Below are positions 4,103-39,995 of a stretch of DNA of 64,000 bases, piece after piece. The stretch comes from Setoptus koraiensis (Eukaryota > Animalia > Arthropoda). The translations under genes were made by a program, and so were the position numbers. The number at the start of each line of letters is the position of its first letter. The first letter of the stretch is position 1. The stretch spans positions 11,904,001 through 11,968,000 of the forward strand of contig CM106586.1 in the NCBI GenBank assembly GCA_048013815.1. Direction: 5' to 3'. The notes beneath the pieces are model-generated. The model searched no databases. It was not told the origin of the DNA and was given only the letters and a program-made list of their open reading frames with translations.

Positions 4103-6290
4103 TTATGATGCGAAATGTAGGATCAATATAATGCCAGATATAATCCATCCAACCAGCTACACAAGAGATTTGTGATGAAAGACAAAATACAAAGTCAGTC
4201 TGTTGTAGTGATGTGATCACTCGGAAATATTTCTTACATTTTAACCAACCATTGGCAAGTTTTCGAGTGTCACTGGATATCTAGCTGCGATCAGAAATGC
4301 GGTGTTCTGGACATCTCCTAGATCATCCGTTACAATCATCAATTGCTGTACGTTCCAGGGAGTCATGAACGACTGATGAATTAGCAGATTCTGTATAGCG
4401 TGATATATTTTTGTGAACTATGATTGAGAATCAAAAGAGCGAGGTTTGAAGTTTTCCGTAAGATGAACATTGTCAAGTTGCTTCGATTTCCGATTCAAAG
4501 GGTGATGTTCAATAGGTTTAAAGCTTGTGCAAGCATACTGACCTTGCTATGGATAACACCAACAGTGAAGCTTATATACACAACAGGAAACGAAAAACCA
4601 AGAAAAAGAGAACTTAATGCCGGAAATTCGGGTTCTTTAAAGCCTGGCATTCTCATGATGGTGGCAACAGTCAACATGACACAAGGCACCTTAAAGATAA
4701 TTTCCAAATTAAGATAGTCGCTGAAGTTTCGCTTTAATTGACCAAAATCGTTGCGCAACTCGGTTACCATTTCTATAAGGGTATCAACATGGCCGGATAT
4801 GTCAATCGAATTCTCAGTTTTGTTCCTTAAGACTAAAGCATCGACTGGATAGTATCCGGAATGGAACAATATTCCAGCATGATAGTCGAAAGTCTTGTCG
4901 TCAACGGCGACCAATATTTTCATTCCATTGTTGTAAATTCTAGTTTGCTTACGATAGAGTTCATTCAATTCTCTGGCGAATCCCAGTGTACACTTTGCTT
5001 TGCTAAAACAGACAAAACAATTTAGGATGAATGGTGCAACGTCTAGAAATAGAAAGATTGTTATAAGTATCGAGATAATGCCAAGAAAAAAAGAAACGAG
5101 GCGCTCTCTCACGAATAGTATCATGGAATCTTGATATTTATAATAATCCGTCAATATCAATATAGGAAAAATTGCCACATCCGAGATATAAAATAGCGTT
5201 AACCACCCGACAAACACCCAATGAGCTAAAAATCTCAGTGACGCTTTATCGACCATGTGAGGACTGCCTTTTATCAGAAAGTGTTTGGGAAATTTAAGCT
5301 GATAATTGATCTCCCGAAAATCATCGTTGAAATCAAACAATATTTTTCCACGCTCCGCCCGTCCTGCGTTGTTCGAATTTCCGATCGTTTCCGCCTTGTT
5401 ATCACACACACCTCTATAGCTAGTCCCACCAATATACGGTCTTTCAGATTTATGGTAACCGAAATTACTTTCGGTGCGATTAAATATGTCGCTTTTCTTC
5501 TCTTGTGACATCTCAAATCCTCCAGGTTTTGATCCTCGGGGGATCCCAAAATGTGTCACTAAATGGTCCCCCCGAATTCACCTGGTATATACTGAACACA
5601 CACACCCAGAGGGTGCGGGGGGGAGGGGGGGGCGGGTGGGGGGGAGGGCGGTGGGGGAGGGGGGTAGGGGCGGGGGAGGCGGATGGGGGTCGGGGGGGGG
5701 GGTGGGGAGACCATCGCACGTGAGGGGGGGGGGGGGGGGGGGGGCGTGATAATCGAGTCTGACCAATCTGCTACTACTTCACATACATGTCTTACGCAAG
5801 CTCTGTCTCGAATCAGTGGACGCACATGGTATATAAGCCAGGCATCGTGGAGAAGCTTAGATGCTTTATCAAATGTCAATCGAAATAATGTCATATTACA
5901 TAATCAATAACTGTCTGGGCCGATATTTGCTCACTACTTCTCTACAAACAGAATTATTTCTGACACGGAAAATGTAAGTTTCAAATCAGAAGTATATGCT
6001 GCGATTCTGTCCACCAGGGACGTTGAGAGCAGTATTTATTAATATAAACTGCAAGAAATGTCGTTCAGCATTATCATATTCTCATCTATCCAACATTACC
6101 TTCCTGCATCGTACACTCGCTCTCATTACAAAATCAATACTAAATGAAATTACATCCATCAGAATAAATTCAATGACAATCAACATAACTACTACTCCAT
6201 GGCAACGAGCGACAAATAATTATGGTTTGTCGGTCTATATCCACGTGTAACTCGACAAAACAAACCTCTACTTACTACAGGCATTATAAT
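4103..6290 (-). CDS. Gustatory-receptor-like gene, copy C (3' part clean: exons to 4543, 4417-4250, 4156-4103; 5' part corrupted beyond ~5545)
   Basis: The 354-aa ORF is clearly paralogous to copy A, with last exon LVGWIISGIILILHFAS*. Here the first 3' intron contains a stop, which confirms it is an intron. Homology to the N-terminus of copy A resumes at 5760-6290 with many 1-nt indels. Confidence 0.6.
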
Positions 6291-12170: not shown

Positions 12171-12748
12171 ATGAAGTTGCTGATTGGTTGCGGCACGTAT
12201 TGGTGAGTTCAGTTCACAGGTGAACATTCACAGGTGAACATTGGTGCACATGGAGCACAAGTTACAGGGAGAGAGAAGGAACGCAATTTTAGAGCAGCTA
12301 GCGCTAGATAAAGAGAAGCTGGCTTTTTCGTCTGGCTCGTCTCGCAGAATGGTTTGCATTCGAAACAGCTGACTGTAAAAATAAATTATGTCTACCATGT
12401 AAGTGTGGCTGTTCGGCTTTTTGGCTCGCTGCTAATGGCTGCTATAATAGTTGTTTTCTCCTTTCAGTACTGTTCTGTTAATCACAATTAGTGTTTGTGC
12501 TATTATTATTATGTAACTAAATTAATTATGCATCCAACAATAATTGGTGGACCGGTGTACCGTTACAACAGAACTTGTCCAGCCCGCACAAGCGCCATTT
12601 GGGAAATTATTGTCCACCATTAGGCTATTTGTGGCACGTAAAAGAGATAGGGAGAGCAGCCGACCAAGGGGAGCTTTGAGAAACAAACGGCAACTCACCA
12701 GCAGCAAGCTAGTTAACAGCGCCCGTTAACAACCAGGGATAGTTGCAA

Positions 12749-13351
12749 ATGTCTATTATATTTCACGAGCGGCAGGAAGGCTCATTGTGCGCTGTACACG
12801 CCTTGAATGCACTGTTACAAGGAGAGTATTTTACGGCGGTCGATCTGGCCACTTTGGCCCATCAACTGGACGATCAGGAGCGCCAAACAATGGCCGAATC
12901 AGGTATCAACGGTAGAGATTATTTAAATTTCATTAGTAATCCCTCGCAGAATATGGACGATTCGGGATTTTTCTCTGTACAAGTATTAGAGAAGGCATTG
13001 AAGGTTTGGAGCCTAGATCTCATACCCTACAATTCAAATTGTGATATTTCCCGACATGTCAGGGCTAATCCAACGACATCGGCCGCGTACATAGCTAATT
13101 ATAGGGAGCATTGGTTCACTATTAGAAGATTTGGTCCACATTGGTTCAACTTGAACTCGTTACTTAATGAACCAGAATTGATATCAGACACCTTTTTGTC
13201 ATTGTTTTTGGCACAACTACAACAAGAGGGCTACTCAATATTTATTGTCAACGGCTTCTTACCCACATGCGACGCCGATCGCGTTCTACCGGACCTACCC
13301 AAAAACGAAGTGGAGACATTCTTAAAATTGGTCCAAGAGTCTCAGTCCTGA
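12749..13351 (+). CDS. ATXN3: Ataxin-3 deubiquitinase, Josephin domain only (200 aa)
   Basis: IFHERQEGSLCAVHALNALLQGEYF, NMDDSGFFSVQV, REHWFTIRRFG, WFNLNSLL; catalytic C/H/N present; intronless; stops shortly after the domain. Confidence 0.93.
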   Translation: MSIIFHERQEGSLCAVHALNALLQGEYFTAVDLATLAHQLDDQERQTMAESGINGRDYLNFISNPSQNMDDSGFFSVQVLEKALKVWSLDLIPYNSNCDISRHVRANPTTSAAYIANYREHWFTIRRFGPHWFNLNSLLNEPELISDTFLSLFLAQLQQEGYSIFIVNGFLPTCDADRVLPDLPKNEVETFLKLVQESQS

Positions 13352-13442: not shown

Positions 13443-13611
13443 ACCATGTTTTTTATATTTAAATAGTTACACATAAATATACATTTATGTGTATATTTAT
13501 GAGTGTGTGTGTACCTTGGAGAGATACAAAAAGTTGATAATAGCCTCCCAATCATTTTTTTTTCTCGGTGCAAGAAGCAACTTCACCCCATCCAAGTCTC
13601 AGCTATTGCGT
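13443..13611. repeat. ~170-bp block also present in both arms of the palindrome
   Basis: accatgttttttatatttaaatagttacac...gtctcagctattgcgt recurs at 15359-15526 and inverted at ~16110-16285. Confidence 0.95.
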
Positions 13612-14643
13612 TGAGGAGATTCCTGATGAGATCAAATAATTGGGGCCGTCACAAGCTGGCGGGCATATAACATTTGGAGTCTCGTCAAGAAGTACTTCGG
13701 CCTCGCTGTAGCCAAATTTGTTAGCAGCTCTGCAAACATATACTCCATATTGTCTTTTCTCTATTTTTTTGACTCGCAAAGTCGTATGTGACAGCTCGTT
13801 AGAAGTATCAAATATTGCTACAGAATAATGTTGATTGTTATTCAACTCTTGACCATCCTTGAGCCAGATAATTGACGGTGATGGAAAGGCCTCTACAGTA
13901 CAGTGTAAGTCGGCATCATATTGCAAAGCTTGCTCGTACCGTGGCTGACCAACTCGAACATCAGGCTTGAATTCAACCTCGACACTAATACCTCGCCTAG
14001 CCCCTGGACTAACACCATTGTCTGCCACACAATAATAGGTGCCCCTGTCATGTTTTGTTACATTATTTAGATTCAATTGCCTCCCTCTGAATATTGCAAC
14101 ACCGCCGTTGATTGCTATTAGAATGTTTTTATTCCTGCGCCAACTAATGGTAGGTTTGGGATACCCGTTCGCGTAACATTGCATCTGTACGTCAAGTCCG
14201 ACAGAAGTGATAATACTTCTAGTGCTGTTGTCCGATATTGTTGGAGGTATTCTTACAAAGATATTTGTTCTTGCTGTCTGAGAACTACCAGTGCCAGAAA
14301 CTATTATTTGGCATTGATAGTTTCCAGCATCGTTCTCGTTGACTTGATTTATTTTTAACTGATATGATCCGTTTCGAGCATTGTAGTTGGCAGAGAATCT
14401 GTTGTCTGGCACATCTATACTCGCTCCACGAGCTATAGTTGTGGCCTGTCTGGTCTCAGAGTTCGGATGAGTTCTTGTCCAACCTATTTGGTAGCCTTCA
14501 ACATCAATGAGATTGCACTTGATTTCTATTTCATCTCCAATGTCGACTATCTGATCTTTACTAATATAGGTTATCGATGGATTAGCTAAACAGAATAGCG
14601 GTAAACTGATTAAGTATAAAGCATACACGAGTAGCAAAGTCAT
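13603..14643 (-). CDS. Lac: Lachesin-like cell adhesion protein (signal peptide + 3 Ig domains), hydrophobic GPI tail apparently absent
   Basis: Signal peptide; NPSITYISKDQIVDIG, VRIPPTISDNSTRS, DRGTYYCVADNGV, VEVEFKP, YGVYVCRAANKFG, CPPAC are typical of lachesin; intronless. Confidence 0.88.
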   Translation of the reverse strand: MTLLLVYALYLISLPLFCLANPSITYISKDQIVDIGDEIEIKCNLIDVEGYQIGWTRTHPNSETRQATTIARGASIDVPDNRFSANYNARNGSYQLKINQVNENDAGNYQCQIIVSGTGSSQTARTNIFVRIPPTISDNSTRSIITSVGLDVQMQCYANGYPKPTISWRRNKNILIAINGGVAIFRGRQLNLNNVTKHDRGTYYCVADNGVSPGARRGISVEVEFKPDVRVGQPRYEQALQYDADLHCTVEAFPSPSIIWLKDGQELNNNQHYSVAIFDTSNELSHTTLRVKKIEKRQYGVYVCRAANKFGYSEAEVLLDETPNVICPPACDGPNYLISSGISSTQ

Positions 14644-14720
14644 TATATTGCTCCAATGAGATCCCCCAAATCCTAGTGAAACCTAACTCCTTAGAGATTA
14701 GAAGGGTAGGAATCAGATGG

Positions 14721-16925
14721 AACTTTTCCAAATTTTCATTCCAAATTTCACTCAGCACATTCATGCATGCCAGCTCAGTTTGAATCCAAAAACAATGCCT
14801 GTTCTCTTTCGCATAAAAAGACAATTTTGAAAGTTACATCACCCAATGCTACGCGCAAGATGCCTTTAACAAACAATTATCACATACGCAGTTCAGAACG
14901 TCCAATAATCAATTTGCATGATGTAGCAAGACCATCAATTAGAGCACAATACAGCACGCAATACAATTTATTATTAAAAGGTTCAAATAATATTAGTAGA
15001 TTGAGACAAAATAAAATCTGTTTCTCTTCTATTCACACCATTGCAAATAATGTTAAATTTAGAACCATGGAAGGTATCCAAAGTCTCGCAACGAATCCAA
15101 CAAGAGAGCACATAGAGAATATTCAGCTCAATGAGCCGACTGCTCCCATAGATGATCACCTTGGTACTCATTATTATTGTTGTCATGATCGTGATACTGC
15201 GTGAATTTTGCCGAAATCACATGAGTTAGGGGAATTCAGCCAAGTTATGAATCATTATCTGCAATAGTCTCAGTATGTCTCTCCACTTTCGCTTCAAACT
15301 TCTAATTTCCAGTCGCTCGACTGTTATCCACTAAAAGACGCGTATATCTCTGACGCTCACCATGTTTTTTATATTTAAATAGTTACACATAAATATACAT
15401 TTATGTGTATATTTATGAGTGTGTGTGTACCTTGGAGAGATACAAAAAGTTGATAATAGCCTCCCAATCATTTTTTTTCTCGGTGCAAGAAGCAACTTCA
15501 CCCCATCCAAGTCTCAGCTATTGCGTCTGGGCAGAAACTTTCTATTCTTTTCTCTACATAAATTATGGTAGTGTTGCAAGTTGATTTTCGCAGAACGAAA
15601 AGATACATTACGTGCCCGCCAGAGTTGGACAACATATTGCACAAAGTCTGAAGGGAGACTTGTTGCTGTCGTTGTTGTTGTTATTATTGTCGGTGTCGTT
15701 ATCGTTGTCGTTATTATTGCCGCCTGTTGATCGAAAAAAAATGACAAGGGTGCCGGTTTCAAGATATGATCGCTATTACCGCATTTACACCACTTACGAT
15801 ACCACCCCGGCTTCTCGGCTTGCTTCCGAACAGTGCGACCACTTATATTGTTATCGATGGCGGTTGTAGCATCAGACCAAAGGTTGTGACAAAAACCTCC
15901 ATTGAAGCACCACAAGTACAACCGCAACAACTACAACAACACCATTGCAAAAACAACAACAATAACAACAACAACGACAGCAACAAGTCTCCCTTCAGAC
16001 TTTGTGCAATATGTTGTCCAACTCTGGCGGGCACGTAATGTATCTTTTCGTTCTGCGAAAATCAACTTGCAACACTACCATAATTTATATAGAGAAAAAA
16101 ATAGAAAGTTTCTGCCCAGACGCAATAGCTGAGACTTGGGTGGGGTGAAGTTGCTTCTTGCACCGAGAAAAAAAATGATTGGGAGGCTATTATCAACTTT
16201 TTGTATCTCTCCAAGGTACACACACACTCATAAATATACACATAAATGTATATTTATGTGTAACTATTTAAATATAAAAAACATGGTGAGCGTCAGAGAT
16301 ATACGCGTCTTTTAGTGGATAACAGTCGAGCGACTGGAAATTAGAAGTTTGAAGCGAAAGTGGAGAGACATACTGAGACTATTGCAGATAATGATTCATA
16401 ACTTGGCTGAATTCCCCTAACTCATGTGATTTCGGCAAAATTCACGCAGTATCACGATCATGACAACAATAATAATGAGTACCAAGGTGATCATCTATGG
16501 GAGCAGTCGGCTCATTGAGCTGAATATTCTCTATGTGCTCTCTTGTTGGATTCGTTGCGAGACTTTGGATACCTTCCATGGTTCTAAATTTAACATTATT
16601 TGCAATGGTGTGAATAGAAGAGAAACAGATTTTATTTTGTCTCAATCTACTAATATTATTTGAACCTTTTAATAATAAATTGTATTGCGTGCTGTATTGT
16701 GCTCTAATTGATGGTCTTGCTACATCATGCAAATTGATTATTGGACGTTCTGAACTGCGTATGTGATAATTGTTTGTTAAAGGCATCTTGCGCGTAGCAT
16801 TGGGTGATGTAACTTTCAAAATTGTCTTTTTATGCGAAAGAGAACAGGCATTGTTTTTGGATTCAAACTGAGCTGGCATGCATGAATGTGCTGAGTGAAA
16901 TTTGGAATGAAAATTTGGAAAAGTT
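14721..16925. repeat. Large inverted repeat: two ~970-bp arms (14721-15690 and 15956-16925), ~265-bp spacer
   Basis: The arms are reverse complements with only a few mismatches. The same peptide (MPAQFESKNN...HDRDTA) is encoded on + at 14767 and on - at 16442. Confidence 0.97.
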
Positions 16926-17044
16926 GCAACTTGTTGGGATTGACACAGAGGCTCGATTCTTTTGCTAATTGATGATAGCACACAAGTACCGTTAATGGGT
17001 TGCCAAGTACGCATAGAAAAGTTGAATCTATAGATTGATGCCAT
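16442..17044 (-). pseudogene. ECHDC1: Chimeric truncated ECHDC1 duplicate (5' coding part fused to unrelated sequence)
   Basis: Nearly identical to the 36556-36034 start of ECHDC1 up to HIENI, then switches to QLNEPTAP...DTA*; lacks the crotonase domain. Confidence 0.85.
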
Positions 17045-18098
17045 TGTCAAACTATTATTGATCTATCTCTTTTATCCAACAATATATCACTACTATATTT
17101 GTGCTAATTAGTGTGTGTGTGTGTGTGTTTGTGTGTGTGCCTCTGCAATTGTGTATATCGATATTATGTGACAGTCAAATATTAATGTGACTAGAATTCT
17201 TACTTTAGACTATTCTGTCTTGTTCTGTCATGGAAATAACAAAAATGTATGAAATAATCCTGTTAGGATTATATTGCAAGTTATCCTTATGTTGGCTGAC
17301 TGTGAGGATCTACTGGACAAGTATATTGCATATTCTTCTCCTTATATGTGTATGGATATTTATGGTGTCTTCATATAATACCTTCGTTTGTGGCTAGGCC
17401 AGTAGCAACGGGCAAAGCTCCAAGCCACGGGTGATTTTCGGTCAGACTCAGGTCGCTTGGGCGGACAGTTGTGGTCGATTGGACTATGTTTGGACTACGA
17501 TGTGTTCGAATGAGATTGTTTTGATGACGATGAATGTACTTGCCGATTGCTACCATTATATTGTGTGTATACTGATAGAGTCCGTCCAGGCTAAAATCTA
17601 GCTGCTTATGAGGATGACACGAAATAAAATTAAATCTCATCAAACTAAAGTTATATTGTATTCAAAGACATTGTGAGCACAGGTTTGAGCTGATGACCAT
17701 AATCATCATCATGGTGGTGACATCATTAGTAGTTAGCGTTTTATATAAACTACTAGTCTACTTGAGAGATACTGAGGTAGTTAGGTGTCTCAGCTGGGGA
17801 GGCATGAGTTGTTGTTGATGCGCATCAGCAGAACGGGATATATGATACACGGAGAAGAAAAAAAACAAACAAAAATAGTTTTGAATCAAGCGCCCTTGGC
17901 CGGCACGCATGCCCAATCTTTCTCTTGATCCTCAAGGAGATATTTTTCTACTTTTCTTCTTGACAAAAAACTGAAGCACCTAACCTTCGATTGAGGCATA
18001 TATAAATTGTCTTGACCAGGCATCCTAAACTATTGTTTACAGTTACTCAAGAGATAGTCGAACATTAATTAGTATTATTTATTAATTAATTTGCAATC

Positions 18099-18349
18099 AT
18101 GTCTCCTTTGTCACGAGTGGGACCATTGGCCTTAAGGTCAATTTATTTCCATCAGCAAAGAGGTATGGCCGCAGCTGCAATTGGAAACATCGATCCAGTT
18201 CAGAGATTGTTTGTTGATAAAATCAATGAGTTTAAATCATCTAACCGTGGCCTCGATTAACAATACAAAAAGAAGGAGCAAGAAGAATTGACTCGCTTGA
18301 AGAAGGTATATCAGGTGATATCGATGATAACAAAGAAAAAATTGTGGCT
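18099..18349 (+). pseudogene. ATP5PF: Disabled coupling-factor-6 half of the duplicated F6-b fusion
   Basis: Same start as 37594, but codon 54 is GAA>TAA (18258-18260) and there is a 67-nt deletion relative to the parent. Confidence 0.88.
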
Positions 18350-19306
18350 ATGATGTCTGGTGAATATTATAAACAACGGCAATTAAAACTCGCGGCTGAA
18401 GCTGCGGAAAACAAAAAGCCAAAGGTGGAGGAACATCATTCACCTTACCATTTACCTCCTTTGGATAGAGAATATTATCCTGAATTGTCACCTGCTTTGG
18501 GTAGAGCACCGGAGGCTCCAGAGTTGACTGAACCAGTGTCACTATTAGAGTCAGGACAAGAATATCTTGATCCCAAAAAGCTTGAAGATGCAGTTAATGT
18601 CAGATTCGGCCCAAACATGCCCACAATTAATGATGATAAGTCACCAGAGCGTGATGTCGTCAACTTCCCTCGTCAGCCACAATTGATGGATGTACCTCCT
18701 AGAGTGCTTCACGTCTTGCCCAAGAGCTGGTTCGATTTTTTCCACCCCAAAACTGGCATTACTGGAGGGTTTACATTTGCCGCCACATTTGGCGCGTTCC
18801 TCGTTTCTAAGGAATGGATAGTAATGGAGCACGAAATATGCACCGGACTTAGTCTTACTATTATTATCTCTTTGGTCGTATCAAAGGCAGGGCCTGCCGT
18901 TAACAAATACCTAGATGGTCTTATAAACAATTCTCTCAAAGGTTGGGATGATTGGCAAAAGAATAATATTCAACTTCTAGATAATGTGGTTGATCATTAT
19001 AAGACCCAAGAAAAAGTAGTTGATAGTTTACCCTTGGTCTATGACGCCAGAAGGGAGGATGTTCAAGTTCAATTGGAGGCCGAATATCGACGACGCCTCA
19101 AAGCCGTTCACGATTCAACGAAGAAGAAACTAAACTACTTGGTTGCCGTAGCCGATTCGAAACGTAACATCGCACACCAGCACATGGTCAACTGGGTTAT
19201 TGATCATGCAGTCAACTCAATTGGACCAAAACAAGAGGCTGATGTTCTAGACAATTGTATAAGCACCCTAAGAAGTTTAGCAGCTAAAAACGCTAATGTA
19301 ATCTAG
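18350..19306 (+). CDS. ATP5PB: ATP synthase subunit b half of the duplicate; ORF intact (318 aa from ATG)
   Basis: Uninterrupted ORF with several amino-acid differences from the parent. Expression and mitochondrial targeting are unknown. Confidence 0.55.
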   Translation: MMSGEYYKQRQLKLAAEAAENKKPKVEEHHSPYHLPPLDREYYPELSPALGRAPEAPELTEPVSLLESGQEYLDPKKLEDAVNVRFGPNMPTINDDKSPERDVVNFPRQPQLMDVPPRVLHVLPKSWFDFFHPKTGITGGFTFAATFGAFLVSKEWIVMEHEICTGLSLTIIISLVVSKAGPAVNKYLDGLINNSLKGWDDWQKNNIQLLDNVVDHYKTQEKVVDSLPLVYDARREDVQVQLEAEYRRRLKAVHDSTKKKLNYLVAVADSKRNIAHQHMVNWVIDHAVNSIGPKQEADVLDNCISTLRSLAAKNANVI

Positions 19307-19585
19307 TGTATTGTTATTATTTTAGACACAATTGCTGAAGCCATGTTTTCATTTACAAATAAAGAACAGAGAAGCTCATCCTAATTCACTGTCATAAAAA
19401 TCTTTTTTGTAAACGCTTTGTTGATTGTGATTATTCATCACAACTTCTTTCTTTCAAATCGATTCTTGAAATGAATTTCTAGGTATGTTACCAAGATAGC
19501 TCAAACTGCCTGAACTTATTATATGTTTCTATTTGTATGTAGACGATCAAAATGATAGTTGTATCATTTATGAGTGTGTGATGGT

Positions 19586-20198
19586 TCAAGAATCATCTCT
19601 GAGTGTTGAAAGGTGTCTTGTTATGAATCCACATCGATGGCTATTATCTACCCATTTTGACATCAAACTTTCCCCCAATCCAACAATTGACTCGTCGCGC
19701 AACAGTAGATTTGGCTGTTCAGTTATGATATTCTCTGCTGAAATTTCTTGTTTGATGGCATTTCCGTGAACACGCTGTCGCACATTGGATTCCGTTGTTT
19801 TGACGTACGGATCAAGACTGAATATTCTAGCTAATTGGATTCTATCATTTACCGGATCGTACGGCTTGAATGTTTTGTGGGCGAAAGCAAATGCTTTGGA
19901 ATTCAATGGAAAGATATTGGCTCTACCTGGTTTGGTCTCCTGTCTATCGTGGCTTGCTCCAATGGATAAGAGGGGTCTAGCTGGCCGCATGCGAATATGA
20001 TGTCTAGGTATCCCAATATGACCAGTTCGAAAAATGAAGGGAGTGACTCTGTCATCCTGAGATTTTTTTATAGGTTTGCGTTGATCCCTAGCATTCCTGA
20101 TACGTTGATTTACTCTTGCCGAGTCTCTAGTCTTTTTTCTGATACGATCAAGCTCCAATTTGGAATTGGTCTGAACTGTTAAATGTTGCTTGTTGAAA
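19586..20198 (-). pseudogene. 5'-truncated duplicate of the orphan gene at 39162-39995
   Basis: Begins at the duplication breakpoint mid-gene; the stop codon has changed TAA>TCA, adding STLRDDS. Confidence 0.75.
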
Positions 20199-20892
20199 CT
20201 ATTGCTTACTGAACACTATTATATGATTCGCAGAAGGAAGGCAGAAAACAAGCCGAGAGCAAGTGTGCGTGAATTTTAGCATTTATTATAGTTGAGTGTG
20301 TTGCAGGTGAGCTAGTTGGCGAGTCGGTGGCTATTTGTGTGAGAACTGAGGCCCCCCACATCAGATGATTCGTTGGCTGGCATATCGGCATCGGCCGGAG
20401 CTACAAAAATGATTGATTGCGTGCGATAAATTTGATGACAATAGCGTGTCAGACAAGAGACCTTTATCAAGCGGATGTGATATATGGTTACTTAATACCG
20501 ATGTATGTGGCCATTTAGTTTGTATAACTGTTTCCATAACGAATCCATGTTTGTCTGGCGACGGCGTATATATTGCAATATCTTGCACACACACTGTTGA
20601 TATAACATGCAAAATGATCGACGGTCAAACAGTGAACGGCCACCTTGATTAATCATTAATTGATTATGTATGTGAGGCCTTTGTTTCACTAGGCGTATCC
20701 CTATTTAGTGCCAGTAATAACAACAATATTTAACATGATGATGAGGTGAGACAACAAGCAAACAACGTTGCTCATTATTACATATTAATAACCAAACACG
20801 CTGCACTGACAAACAAAATCTCATCGAGATCACTCATTGTTCTCAAACAAACTGCTGCAACTAGCTCGCTCCTTGTTCAACAATTGTTGTAT

Positions 20893-21165
20893 GTACAACC
20901 GCAACAACTACAACAACACCATTGCAAAAACAACAACAATAACAACAACAGTGAGCGTCAGAGATATACTCGAGCGACTGGAAATTAGAAGTTTGAAGCG
21001 AAAGTGGAGAGACATACTGAGACTATTGCAGATAATGATTCATAACTTGGCTGAATTCCCCTAACTCATGTGATTTCGGCAAAATTCACGCAATATCACG
21101 ATCATGACAACAATAATAATGAGTACCAAGGTGATCATCTATGGGAGCAGTCGGCTCAGTGAGCT
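20893..21165. repeat. Internally deleted copy of the 15916-16521 segment
   Basis: 20893-20950 matches 15916-15975; 20951-21165 matches 16286-16521 minus a 21-nt stretch. Confidence 0.92.
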
Positions 21166-35111: not shown

Positions 35112-36556
35112 TCAAGCATCATTGTGTTTTATATTATTGTTTAAAGCAGCTAAATGAGCCTCTTTGCCCCAAGTTGACGCAAGAAGCTGACATTCAGCAA
35201 CCAAAGCCTGTTCCAAGGGTAGTGTTCTGGCAGCATTAACTATACCTTTCATCGCAATAATAGTGGTCTTGGCACCAATCAGATGGGCCTTCAGATATTC
35301 ATGAGCTTTAGCCATGATTGCTGCATCGTCTGTTTCATCACAATCTATTATATAATTCACCAGTCCCATTTGATAAGCTTCTTGAGCACTGACAAGACGA
35401 CCGCTTGCCATCATTTCTAATGCTCTGCCAGGTCCAACTAATTGGACAAGACGACTACCACCACCCCAGGCACTACATATTCCAACGCGTGCGTGAACAT
35501 AGCCTATTTTGGCTGTCTTAGTTATAATTCTTATATCGGTTGCCACAGCGATCTCAGCCCCACCACCAATGGCTTTCCCTTGAACCATTGCCATCGTTAT
35601 CATGGGAAGAGCCTGTAAACGAGATAAGTTATATTGCATTAGGGTTGCCATATTCAGACCATCTTCGTGATTGGCAAGCTCTCTAACGGAGACCAAGTCG
35701 CCACCTGAGCGGAAAAATTTCAGATTTGTGTATAAGAAACTCATTAACACTCAACCGTTATCATGGAGCTAATTTGAATTGTTCATACTTTTGTGTCATC
35801 AAAATTACCTGAACAAAAGAATCCACCATGACCGTAGATTAGGACACCCTTTCCTTCTTCCCAATTATACAGTTCTTCGATGACATCTAGTAGATCACTC
35901 ATCATCTTTGCCGATATGCCATTTTTACATCCGCTTTTAATACATACTGTTCCTATACCAGTGGTGTTATCTTTTTCAAGGGTTATCTGTTGATTATCAT
36001 TACATTTAGCATTCATATGGGCAAACTGGCTCCGAATATTCTCTATGTGCTCTCTTGTTGGATTCGTTGCGAGACTTTGGATACCTTCCATGGTTCTAAA
36101 TTTAACATTATTTGCAATGGTGTGAATAGAAGAGAAACAGATTTTATTTTGTCTCAATCTACTAATATTATTTGAGCTTCGTAATAATAAATTGTATTGC
36201 GTGCTGTATTGTGCTCTAATTGATGGTCTTGCTACATCATGCAAATTGATTATTGGACGTTCTGAACTGCGTATGCGATAATTGTTTGTTAAAGGCATCT
36301 TGCGCGTAGCATTGGGTGATGTAACTTTCAAAATAGTCTTTTTATGCGAAAGAGAACAGGCATTGTTTTTGGATTCAAACTGAGCTGGCATGCATGAATG
36401 TGCTGAGTGAAATTTGGAATAAAAATTTGGAAAAGTTGCAACTTGTTGGGATTGATACAGAGGCTCGATTCTTTTGCTAATTGATGATAGCACACGAGTA
36501 CCGTTAATGGGTTGCCAAGTACGCATAGAAAAGTTGAATCTATAGATTGATGCCAT
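35112..36556 (-). CDS. ECHDC1: Ethylmalonyl-CoA decarboxylase-like crotonase (exons 36556-35809, 35704-35112)
   Basis: GKGVLIYG..FCS|GGDL, MATLMQYNL, VQGKAIGGGAEI, WGGGSRLVQLVG; 104-nt GT-AG intron at 35808-35705. The true start codon is uncertain. Confidence 0.88.
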
Positions 36557-37593
36557 TGTCAAACTATTGTTGATCTATCTCTTTTATCCAACAATATATC
36601 ACTACTATATTTGTGCTAATTAGTGTGTGTGTGTGTGTGCCTCTGCAATTGTGTATATCGATATTATGTGACAGTCAAATATTTATGTGACTAGAATTCT
36701 TACTTTAGACTATTCTGTTGATATCATGGAAATAACAAAAATGTGTGAAATAATCCTGTTAGAACTATATTGCAAGTTATCCTTCTGTTGGCTGACTGTG
36801 AGGATCTACTGGACAAGTATATTGCATATTCTTCTCCTTATATGTGTATAGATATTTATGGTGCCTTCATATAATACCTTCGTTTGTGGCTAGGCCAGTA
36901 GCAACGGGCAAAGCTCCAAGCCACGGGTGATTTTCGGTCAGACTCAGGTCGCTTGGGCGGACAGTTGTGGTCGATTGGACTATGTTTGGACTACGATGTG
37001 TTCGAATGAGATTGTTTTGATGACGATGAATGTACTTGCCGATTGCTACCATTATATTGTGTGTATACTGATAGAGTCCGTCCAGGCTAAAATCTAGCTG
37101 CTTATGAGGATGACACGAAATAAAATTAAATCTCATCAAACTGAAGTTATATTGTATTCAAAGACATTGTGAGCACAGGTTTGAGCTGATGACCATAATC
37201 ATCATCATGGTGGTGACATCATTAGTAGTTAGCGTTTTATATAAACTACTAGTCTACTGGAGAGATACTGAGGTAGTTAGGTGTCTCAGCTGGAGAGGCA
37301 TGAGTTGTTGTTGTTGATGCGCATCAGCAGAACGGGATATATGATACACGGAGAAAAAAAAACAAACAAAAATAGTTTTGAATCAAGCGCCCTCGGCCGG
37401 CACGCATGCCCAATCTTTCTCTCGATCCTCAAGGAGATATTTTTCTACTTTTATTCTTGACAAAAAACTGAAGCACCTAACCTTCGATTGAGGGATATAA
37501 ATTGTCTTGACCAGGCATCCTAAACTATTGTTTACAGTTACTCAAGAGATAGTCGAACATTAATTAGTGTTATTTATTAATTAATTTGCAATC

Positions 37594-38868
37594 ATGTCTC
37601 CTTTGTCACGAGTGGGACCATTGGCCTTGAGGTCAATTTATTTCCATCAGCAAAGAGGTATGGCCGCAGCTGCAATTGGAAACATCGATCCAGTTCAGAG
37701 ATTGTTTGTTGATAAAATCAATGAGTTTAAATCATCTAACCGTGGTCTCGATGAACAATACAAGAAGAAGGAGCAAGAAGAATTGACTCGCTTGAAGAAG
37801 GTATATCAGGTAGAAAATGAGGCTAAATTGGCACAGATTGAATCCAATTTTCCCAAGACCTCGGATATTAGCTTAGGTGATATCGATGATAACAAAGAAA
37901 GAATTGTGGCCATGATGTCTGGTGAATATTACAAACAACGGCAATTAAAACTCGCGGCCGAAGCTGCGGAAAACAAAAAGCCAAAGGTGGAGGAACATCA
38001 TTCACCTTACCATCTACCTCCTTTGGATAGAGAGCCTTATCCTGAACTGTTACCTTCTTTGGATAGAGCACCGGAGGCTCCAGAGTTGACTGAACCAGTG
38101 TCACTATTAGAGTCAGGACAAGAATATCTTGATCCCAAAAAGCTTGAAGATGCAGTTAATGTCAGATTCGGCCCAAACATGCCCACAATTAATGATGATA
38201 AGTCACCAGAGCGTGATGTCGTCAACTTCCCTCGTCAGCCACAATTGATGGATGTACCTCCTAGAGTGCTTCACGTCTTGCCCAAGAGCTGGTTCGATTT
38301 TTTCCACCCCAAAACTGGCATTACTGGAGGGTTTACATTTGCCGCCACATTTGGCGCGTTCCTCGTTTCTAAGGAATGGATAGTAATGGAGCACGAAATA
38401 TGCACCGGACTTAGTCTTACTATTATTATCTCTTTGGTCGTATCAAAGGCAGGACCTGCCGTCAACAAATACCTAGATGGTCTTATAAACAATCATATCA
38501 AGGGATGGGATGATTGGCAAAAGAATAATATTCAACTTCTAGATAATGTGGTTGATCATTATAAGACCCAAGAAAAAGTAGTTGATAGTTTACCCTTGGT
38601 CTATGATGCCAGAAGGGAGGATATTCAAGTTCAATTGGAGGCCGAATATCGACGACGCCTCAAAGCCGTTCACGATTCAACGAAGAAGAAACTAAACTAC
38701 TTGGTTGCCGTAGCCGACTCTAAACGTAACATCGCACACCAGCACATGGTCAACTGGGTTATTGATCATGCAGTCAACTCAATTGGACCAAAACAAGAGG
38801 CTGATGTTCTAGACAATTGTATAAGCACCCTAAAAAGTTTAGCAGCTAAAAACGCTAATGTAATCTAG
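37594..38868 (+). CDS. ATP5PF-ATP5PB: Single-ORF fusion of mitochondrial ATP synthase coupling factor 6 (N-terminal) and subunit b (C-terminal), 424 aa
   Basis: Presequence-like residues 1-22; DPVQRLFVDKINEFK...EELTRLKKVY...NFPK is F6-like (aa ~32-98); PERDVVNFPR...SWFDFFHPKTGITG...SKEWIVMEHE...LEAEYRRR...HMVNWV is subunit b (aa ~205-424). No stop or intron is needed to join them. Confidence 0.88.
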   Translation: MSPLSRVGPLALRSIYFHQQRGMAAAAIGNIDPVQRLFVDKINEFKSSNRGLDEQYKKKEQEELTRLKKVYQVENEAKLAQIESNFPKTSDISLGDIDDNKERIVAMMSGEYYKQRQLKLAAEAAENKKPKVEEHHSPYHLPPLDREPYPELLPSLDRAPEAPELTEPVSLLESGQEYLDPKKLEDAVNVRFGPNMPTINDDKSPERDVVNFPRQPQLMDVPPRVLHVLPKSWFDFFHPKTGITGGFTFAATFGAFLVSKEWIVMEHEICTGLSLTIIISLVVSKAGPAVNKYLDGLINNHIKGWDDWQKNNIQLLDNVVDHYKTQEKVVDSLPLVYDARREDIQVQLEAEYRRRLKAVHDSTKKKLNYLVAVADSKRNIAHQHMVNWVIDHAVNSIGPKQEADVLDNCISTLKSLAAKNANVI

Positions 38869-39161
38869 TGTATTGTTATTATTTTAGACACAATTGCTGA
38901 AGCCATGTTTTCATTTACAAATAAAGAACAGAGAAGCTCATCCTAATTCACTGTCACAAAAATCTTTTTTGTAAACGCTTTGGTGATTGTGAGTAATTCA
39001 TCACAACTTCTTTCTCTCAAATCGATTCTTGAAATGGATTTCTATGTATGTTTCCAAGACTGCCTGAACTTATTATATGTTTCTATTTGTATGTAGACGA
39101 TTAGAATGATAGTTGTATCATTTTATGAGTGTGTGATGGTTCAAGAATCATCTCTGAGTGT

Positions 39162-39995
39162 TTAAAGGTGTCTTGTTATGAATCCACATCGATGGGTATT
39201 ATCTATCCATTTTGACATCAAACTTTCCCCCAATCCAACAATTGACTCGTCGCGCAACAGTAGATTTGGCTGTTCAGTTATGATATTCTCTGCTAAAATT
39301 TCTTGTTTGATGGCATTTCCGTGAACACGCTGTTGCACATTGGATTCCGTTGTTTTGACGTACGGATCAAGATTGAATATTCTAGCTAATTGGATTCTAT
39401 CATTTACCGGATCGTACGGCTTGAATGTTTTGTGGGCGAAAGCAAATGCTTTGGAATTCAATGGAAAGATATTGGCTCTACCTGGTTTGGTCTCCTGTCG
39501 ATCGTGGCCTGGTCCAATCGAAAAAAGGGGTCTAGCTGGCCGCATGCGAATATGATGTCTAGGTATCCCAATATGACCAGTTCGAAAAATGAAGGGACTG
39601 ACTCTGTCACCCTGAGATTTTTTTATAGGTTTGCGTTGATCCCTAGCATTCCTGATATGTCGATTTACTCTTGTCGAGTCTCTAGTCTTTTTCCTGATAC
39701 GATCAAGCTCCAATTTGGAATTGGTCTGAACTGTTAAATGTTGCTTGTTGAAATCGTGTACGCAAGATTTTTTCTTTAAATCTATTCCTGGTGATCCATT
39801 GTGGGACGAATCTAATAGCGGTGGAAGTTTCTGACAAGAATAAATACTTTTTGCTCGAGGTTCAGAAAAGTAGTGACTAAAATCACTAGCCTCTCTATTT
39901 TGTTGCTCCTGCTCTTCTTTGATACTTGTTCTAAGTTGATGCAGAAATTCTATAATCTTCTCCAATCTATCTGTAATCTCGGATTCGTCTTCCAT
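39162..39995 (-). CDS. Orphan 277-aa basic protein, no family recognised
   Basis: ATG-initiated intronless ORF in gene-dense context with ordinary amino-acid complexity; the frame is preserved in the duplicate. Confidence 0.55.
   Translation of the reverse strand: MEDESEITDRLEKIIEFLHQLRTSIKEEQEQQNREASDFSHYFSEPRAKSIYSCQKLPPLLDSSHNGSPGIDLKKKSCVHDFNKQHLTVQTNSKLELDRIRKKTRDSTRVNRHIRNARDQRKPIKKSQGDRVSPFIFRTGHIGIPRHHIRMRPARPLFSIGPGHDRQETKPGRANIFPLNSKAFAFAHKTFKPYDPVNDRIQLARIFNLDPYVKTTESNVQQRVHGNAIKQEILAENIITEQPNLLLRDESIVGLGESLMSKWIDNTHRCGFITRHL

Follow-up and report, generated by a model that had tools for sequence, protein, structure and literature searches.

In Drosophila, young hairpin RNA (hpRNA) loci are born close to the genes from which they derive and make use of transcription units that already exist (PMC10317233). 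Such loci are recognized by Dicer-dependent small RNAs and by a primary transcript that increases upon loss of Dicer, and their targets are typically young, selfish genes of the testis (PMC10317233). Aculops lycopersici, the one eriophyoid mite examined, has no clear AGO2, R2D2 or RNA-dependent RNA polymerase (RdRP), as reported in its eLife genome paper (PMC7738191). This analysis concerns a 2.2-kb palindrome of gene fragments in another eriophyoid mite, Setoptus koraiensis. It lies in a window of 64,000 nucleotides (C2:11904001-11968000; unprefixed positions are those of the window), and an earlier sequence-only reading had nominated it as an hpRNA locus producing endogenous small interfering RNAs (endo-siRNAs). 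The arms contain the 5' coding sequence (CDS) of ECHDC1, the gene for ethylmalonyl-CoA decarboxylase, and are flanked by a duplicate of the ECHDC1 promoter and by a truncated lachesin-like gene. The evidence favors, by a modest measure, an origin as a fold-back inverted duplication inside a patchwork of template-switch products, either young or homogenized by gene conversion. Most likely, the palindrome itself is a mutational by-product that has no selected function.

A repeat search of the window returned one long inverted repeat (991-nt arms, 99% complementarity), which base-by-base comparison resolved into two arms of exactly 970 nt that differ from one another at just three positions. A repeat of such length and identity cannot have originated by chance. 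The near-perfect arms of about 970 bp described in the sequence-only reading are thus confirmed, and its outer coordinates proved exact. In a search of the whole genome assembly (48.76 Mb in two contigs, C1 and C2) the arms matched only at this locus, and neither the spacer between them nor the source-less block U occurred a second time other than as CAA-rich low complexity. The sequences flanking the palindrome are unique, differ from one another and lie within a 24.5-Mb contig. The palindrome is a real feature of an eriophyoid-mite chromosome and occurs there once.

Each arm is a mosaic, and the origins of its blocks could be assigned for the most part (Table 1). The sequence-only reading had described the arms as composed of ECHDC1 5' coding sequence, a block shared with the lachesin 3' end, a block shared with positions 20951-21165 and a coding-like piece (SLPSDF...). 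The first and third of these attributions held. Block E is real ECHDC1 coding sequence, and block X derives, together with block C, from a native segment that runs on into its own downstream flank. Block L, the one seen at the lachesin 3' end, does not come from lachesin, since it is absent from the intact lachesin parent on C1; it is native DNA between a Josephin gene and the patchwork insert. The coding appearance of the remaining piece found no support, as the SLPSDF... open reading frame (ORF) has neither a Pfam family nor a homologue. A 138-aa ORF that spans U' and the spacer was likewise rejected as evidence of a gene, having no Pfam family and no homologue.

The two arms have in common all seven differences that separate block E from its ECHDC1 parent, including those that give YHIRSS and LKGS, as had been recognized from the letters alone. 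Also common to both arms are the two substitutions and the 21-nt insertion of block X, for which no templated source was found within the window, and a 1-nt change in a T-run of block L. Because the arms share their internal junctions as well as all of these source differences, the mosaic must have been assembled first and inverted later. Block E of the right arm continues unbroken into a 3.7-kb segmental duplicate beyond the arm's outer end, which identifies the right arm as the original and the left arm as the inverted copy.

The arms are more similar to one another than to their sources. Across blocks E and X, none of 638 nt differ between the arms, versus 9 of 617 between these blocks and their sources (Fisher p = 0.0016), and the outer 790 nt of the arms are identical. 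The three arm differences cluster within 52 nt of the inner part (P ~0.009), where the divergence of 3 in 180 nt (1.7%) equals that of block E from its parent. This clustering fits a conversion tract or growth of the palindrome in two steps and, coming from a single genome, is suggestive only. An older palindrome, in which gene conversion recently homogenized the outer 790 nt, would fit as well. Either the event is young or conversion from arm to arm has homogenized the outer stretches, and these two explanations account for the near-identity of the arms as well as does selection for a duplex.

The point at which the sequence turns round suggests how the inversion may have occurred. Across the C|U junction (15973/15974), 12 nucleotides of CAA/TTG repeat match perfectly between native C and the inner end of the left arm read in reverse complement, and CAA-rich and TTG-rich tracts lie 225 nt apart at this point. 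A 3' end that had broken or stalled and that terminated in C could have paired, by folding back, with the TTG tract 225 nt upstream, and its own strand would then have served as the template. This fold-back would have taken place at the left edge of the older 3.7-kb segmental duplication, inside the patchwork, the other pieces of which were presumably joined through template switching or end joining; at the remaining junctions, there is microhomology of 0-2 nt or a small number of filler bases. Because the duplicated ECHDC1 promoter and its start codon lie a short distance upstream of the right arm, transcription probably proceeds into it, and read-through would then generate 970 bp of double-stranded RNA (dsRNA) as a side effect.

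The patchwork in which the palindrome is embedded extends over 7.3 kb (13611-20892) and is made of segments copied from at least six source loci. Identities between pieces and sources are 89%, 94%, 97%, 98% and 99%, spanning 89-99.7%, and it is this span that indicates construction in several steps and led us to reject a single catastrophic event. Two non-coding pieces, m1 and m2, lie between the 3.7-kb duplicate and native C-X, and their sources are found 13-17 kb before the window. They predate the other fragments and mark the spot as a repeated sink for copied DNA. The uniqueness of U and the spacer, together with the re-copied stretches of L (169 nt) and C (58 nt) on either side of the inserted blocks, points to a probable native order that ran from Josephin through L, U', the spacer, C and X to acetyl-CoA synthetase (22995 onward).

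Table 1. Coordinates of the palindrome, its blocks and their sources, and neighboring copied segments
Feature	Position	Strand	Remarks
Left arm	14721-15690		E' 14721-15124 (ECHDC1 5' CDS, sense on +), X' 15125-15359, L 15359-15526, U' 15527-15690
Spacer, non-palindromic	15691-15955		265 nt, GC 45%; final 40 nt are the start of block C
Right arm	15956-16925		C end, U 15974-16119, L' 16120-16287, X 16287-16521, E 16522-16925
Block C	15916-15973		Same as 20893-20950, 100%; last 18 nt inside right arm
Block U	15974-16119		Source-less piece
Block L'	16120-16287		Inverted copy of 13443-13611, 99%
Block X	16287-16521		Copy of 20951-21165; 2 substitutions and 21-nt insertion
Block E	16522-16925		Copy of 36034-36437
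Native C-X	20893-21165		Contiguous with downstream flank; source of arm blocks C and X
Native L	13443-13611		Between convergent Josephin gene (12743-13351, +) and lachesin copy
Truncated lachesin-like duplicate	13603-14643	-	346 aa, three Ig domains, signal peptide, without GPI-signal tail
Permuted 56-nt piece	14665-14720	-	170 nt downstream of stop in C1 parent; here upstream of copy, abuts left arm
200-aa open frame	16442-17044	-	From duplicated ECHDC1 ATG (17044) via block E into X
3.7-kb segmental duplicate	16522-20198	+	Same as 36034-39753, ~97%
F6-b ATP-synthase duplicate	18099-19306	+	Versus 37594-38868; F6 half broken
m1, non-coding copied piece	20201-20506	+	89% to C2:11890537-11890833
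m2, non-coding copied piece	20510-20890	+	94% to C2:11887174-11887552
Parental ECHDC1 exon 1	35783-36556	-	Ethylmalonyl-CoA decarboxylase; 36034-36437 is the source of block E

The parental ECHDC1 ORF and the exon that follows it carry an enoyl-CoA hydratase domain, and the best named relative is the ethylmalonyl-CoA decarboxylase of Aceria tosichella, the wheat curl mite. In eriophyoid ECHDC1 orthologues, the conserved domain is preceded by a fast-evolving N-terminal extension of ~170 aa that is itself poorly conserved, and it is the region of this extension that was copied into the arms. When the changes since duplication were polarized with a close relative (81% at the protein level), four of the five fell on the functional parental gene and one on the copy, a difference that is not significant. 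The sequence-only reading held that the duplicated ECHDC1 upstream region points into the palindrome, and this was borne out: the region and its start codon are 97-98% identical to the original and face the right arm, the ATG lying 119 nt upstream of it. The open frame that begins at this ATG runs through block E, and any transcription of the palindrome driven by the promoter would enter here.

Several observations weigh against the view that the palindrome is a functionless product of fold-back repair. The 3.7-kb duplicate contains, besides the ECHDC1 5' CDS fragment, the intergenic promoter region between ECHDC1 and the fused F6-b ATP-synthase gene, a copy of F6-b and a 5'-truncated gene copy. 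Within it, the intergenic promoter stretch has diverged from its original by 1.9%, versus 6.3% at F6-b synonymous sites (p = 0.0004), which hints that the regulatory DNA of the duplicate is still in use. The region looks transcriptionally alive, and this would raise the chance that the palindrome is transcribed. The palindrome is situated directly downstream of this intact-looking promoter and ATG, a suggestive position, and only 77 bp upstream of an ORF, the lachesin-like copy, that has been shaped by purifying selection. Finally, the perfect identity of 790 nt would also be expected if a duplex were under selection.

The rival that survives best is that the locus is a functional hpRNA gene, in which minus-strand transcription from the duplicated ECHDC1 promoter crosses both arms and the stem is diced to repress ECHDC1 and any transcripts carrying native L or X. 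We regard this as unlikely, although much in the structure is compatible with it. The predicted minus-strand RNA folds into a stem of 968 pairs with a minimum free energy of -1864 kcal/mol, and the correctly oriented promoter and ATG would place a putative RNA start ~120 nt before the right arm. Perfect 21-mers common to the arms and the ECHDC1 parent (36034-36436) number 299 of 383, with 148 of 195 for native X and 136 of 149 for native L; no further site in the window shares 21-mers with the arms. The sequence-only reading had predicted ~1 kb of dsRNA able to target both ECHDC1 and lachesin mRNAs. The predicted stem and the match to ECHDC1 agree with the first half of this prediction, and the second half fails, since the true lachesin gene on C1 has no sequence in common with the arms and cannot be a target. 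In its place, only transcripts that hold the native block 13443-13611 could be hit. The proximity of the palindrome to ECHDC1 and to a duplicated promoter resembles the context in which young Drosophila hpRNAs are born (PMC10317233), and such a gene would have been born when the fold-back put an inverted copy of ECHDC1 5' coding sequence behind a duplicate of that gene's own promoter.

Also in favor of this reading, the genome contains three Dicer-type and at least ten PAZ-plus-Piwi open frames, at sites that include C1:16.29 Mb, C2:6.39 Mb and C2:23.45 Mb. All three Dicer-type frames have Dicer-dimer and paired RNase III domains and one has a PAZ domain; the two others, of 1740 aa, gave no PAZ match above threshold. 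Against a functional hpRNA gene, no RdRP was found in the genome, and the Drosophila Dcr-2/R2D2/AGO2 route that had been assumed loses its footing because clear counterparts are lacking in the one eriophyoid examined, as they are for RdRP (PMC7738191). ECHDC1 is a conserved housekeeping enzyme, unlike the typical targets of hpRNAs (PMC10317233). Furthermore, the transcribed strand of the right arm contains the polyadenylation-like hexamers AATAAA and ATTAAA, and recency or gene conversion accounts equally for the arm identity that a duplex under selection would otherwise explain. As far as the letters can tell, the hairpin-RNA idea remains plausible. A narrower version, an hpRNA gene in a lineage reportedly devoid of recognizable AGO2, R2D2 and RdRP, in which ECHDC1 would be co-expressed with the hairpin and would limit itself via a non-canonical Dicer/Argonaute route, is a less probable proposition still.

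The lachesin-like copy on the far side of the palindrome raises a different possibility. Its parent is an intact 377-aa gene on C1, to which it is 98.1% identical. Homology to the parent ends exactly at L, leaving the copy without the last 31 codons, which specify the hydrophobic tail that signals attachment of a glycosylphosphatidylinositol (GPI) anchor, and of the parental upstream DNA only 21 nt are retained. Copy and parent differ at 17 synonymous and 3 non-synonymous sites (ratio of non-synonymous to synonymous differences, pN/pS, 0.05; p = 5e-9), a pattern which indicates that purifying selection has acted on the copy during most of the time since the two separated. Its product would now be secreted rather than GPI-anchored, and is possibly a new secreted Ig-domain protein. 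The adjacency of its ATG (14643) to the palindrome was correctly noted from the sequence, at a distance from the left arm that is 77 bp rather than 78. Downstream of the stop codon in the parent, and here upstream of the copy, is a permuted piece of 56 nt, an instance of circular permutation that suggests either the junction of a tandem duplication or an intermediate of circular DNA. A retrocopy origin, considered on account of a 5' limit near an initiator-like motif, was rejected: the copy is 3'-truncated and has no poly(A), and the permuted piece better fits the tandem junction or circular intermediate.

Given this gene, the palindrome could be the 5' leader, or an intron spliced out of the transcript, of a lachesin-derived gene that has captured the duplicated ECHDC1 promoter 2.4 kb upstream. 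The strong selection on a copy that lacks its parental promoter speaks for this, as do the duplicated ECHDC1 promoter being the nearest on the same strand and the pyrimidine-tract-plus-AG motifs in the 77-nt gap. A 970-bp stem in the leader would, however, stop scanning ribosomes, and the splice sites are motif-level guesses only. The retained 21 nt hold an initiator-like TCATTG, so that the copy may own a core promoter, and the signal of selection may be older than the present arrangement. Promoter capture is therefore quite improbable in our estimation.

An artefact of assembly or library preparation, in which a fold-back chimeric read, an amplification chimera or a mis-join has given two arms to a chromosome that really has one, would explain the identity of the outer 790 nt. 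The amount of DNA available is often very small when tiny mites are sequenced, and chimeras produced by amplification typically are inverted and start from short complementarity of the kind seen at the C|U junction. The marks of a fold-back chimera, namely perfect symmetry, a spacer that is absent or consists only of adapter, and symmetry that runs to the contig end, are missing here. Instead, the arms differ at three positions, the 265-nt spacer is unique and is not adapter, and the two flanks, unique and different, each run into a chromosome-scale contig. The structure also needs two junctions, where a single chimeric read yields one, and the outer junction between the lachesin 3' piece and E' demands, whatever the reading, that an inverted ECHDC1 block lie next to the lachesin copy. 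We consider an artefact very unlikely. A gene-fragment-capturing transposon, of the Pack type with terminal inverted repeats or Helitron-like, both of which look like mosaics of fragments from several genes between inverted ends, can be set aside as barely credible because there is no target-site duplication at the arm ends and no second copy in the genome, while the "terminal repeat" would be the whole 970-nt mosaic, the right arm passes seamlessly into a duplicated chromosomal segment, and nearly all sources lie within ~55 kb, as template switching predicts.

The other genes of the 3.7-kb duplicate have fared unequally. In the fused F6-b copy, the F6 half is broken by a stop at codon 54 and by a deletion of 67 nt, and the b half is open with a pN/pS of 0.21. 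The source segment also includes a 277-aa ORF (39162-39995, minus strand) that belongs to no Pfam family and has a 5'-truncated duplicate at 19586-20158 (minus strand); because pN/pS against this duplicate is 0.92, the ORF may be unconstrained or may not be a real gene. A scan of the 12-23 kb interval with Rfam identified no family, the single match, to SCARNA7, being dismissed as sub-threshold (27 bits versus a gathering score of 65). Six junction-spanning or local proteins had no exact match in the protein collection, and a metagenome scan with the Josephin protein returned short contigs only, at ~60% identity, which were of no use for synteny. Among 20 ten-kb pieces drawn at random from the genome (200 kb in total), one contained a local inverted repeat of at least 150 nt. 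A local inverted repeat found in the randomly sampled piece C2:5000001-5010000 has 438-nt arms (2440-2877 and 5773-6205 of that piece) of 93% identity separated by a 2.9-kb spacer.

If the palindrome were transcribed and diced, it would be a first concrete candidate for an endogenous hpRNA in gall and rust mites. It would then provide a natural test of whether streamlined genomes with several Dicers, many Argonautes and no clear AGO2, R2D2 or RdRP keep long-dsRNA silencing, a question that bears on the control of gall- and rust-mite crop pests by RNA interference. Otherwise, the locus is still a case, amenable to clean dissection, of how fold-back and template-switching repair accumulate fragments of genes in a highly compact animal genome, and of how a truncated lachesin-like gene without its GPI signal has come through such a rearrangement under selection.

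Compared with described systems, the palindrome shares with Drosophila hpRNA loci, such as D. simulans hp58, hp88, Nmy/Tmy and hp-ODox, the inverted duplication of a fragment of a protein-coding gene, and with hp-ODox in particular it shares arms that mix sequences of several origins (PMC10317233, PMC10292708). Like young hpRNA loci, it lies near its progenitor, at a distance of 20 kb, and close to an existing transcription unit, and it has long perfect complementarity to the progenitor mRNA. The defining signatures of hpRNA loci are a primary transcript and Dicer-dependent small RNAs, whereas the present locus is a candidate nominated from its sequence. Its host also differs, being of an eriophyoid lineage for which recognizable AGO2, R2D2 and RdRP are reported to be missing, and its putative target is a conserved metabolic enzyme. 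In mouse oocytes, pseudogene-derived inverted repeats are said, in work attributed to Watanabe et al. and Tam et al. in 2008, to give rise to endo-siRNAs. The present locus resembles these in having duplicated, partly decayed gene copies arranged head-to-head with the potential to form dsRNA against a functional parent, a resemblance drawn here from the DNA itself.

Near-identical arms, a unique spacer, arms closer to one another than to their sources and clustered differences are also features of palindromes maintained by gene conversion, such as those of primate sex chromosomes. Those palindromes extend over 10 kb to megabases and contain intact genes, whereas the arms described here measure 1 kb and contain gene scraps, and conversion is deduced here from three differences in a single genome. 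The fold-back origin that we favor has parallels among replication-based complex rearrangements, namely in the products of fork stalling and template switching (FoSTeS), or microhomology-mediated break-induced replication (MMBIR), and in the duplication-triplication/inverted-duplication (DUP-TRP/INV-DUP) rearrangements of human genomic disorders. The palindrome resembles these in that an inverted duplication and a spacer occur together with several short pieces templated by loci in the vicinity, in its junction microhomology of 0-12 nt, and in inserts bounded by the re-copied native L and C. It departs from single FoSTeS/MMBIR events in that its pieces are of different ages, as their range of identities to their sources indicates, and in that one of them was copied from the other chromosome.

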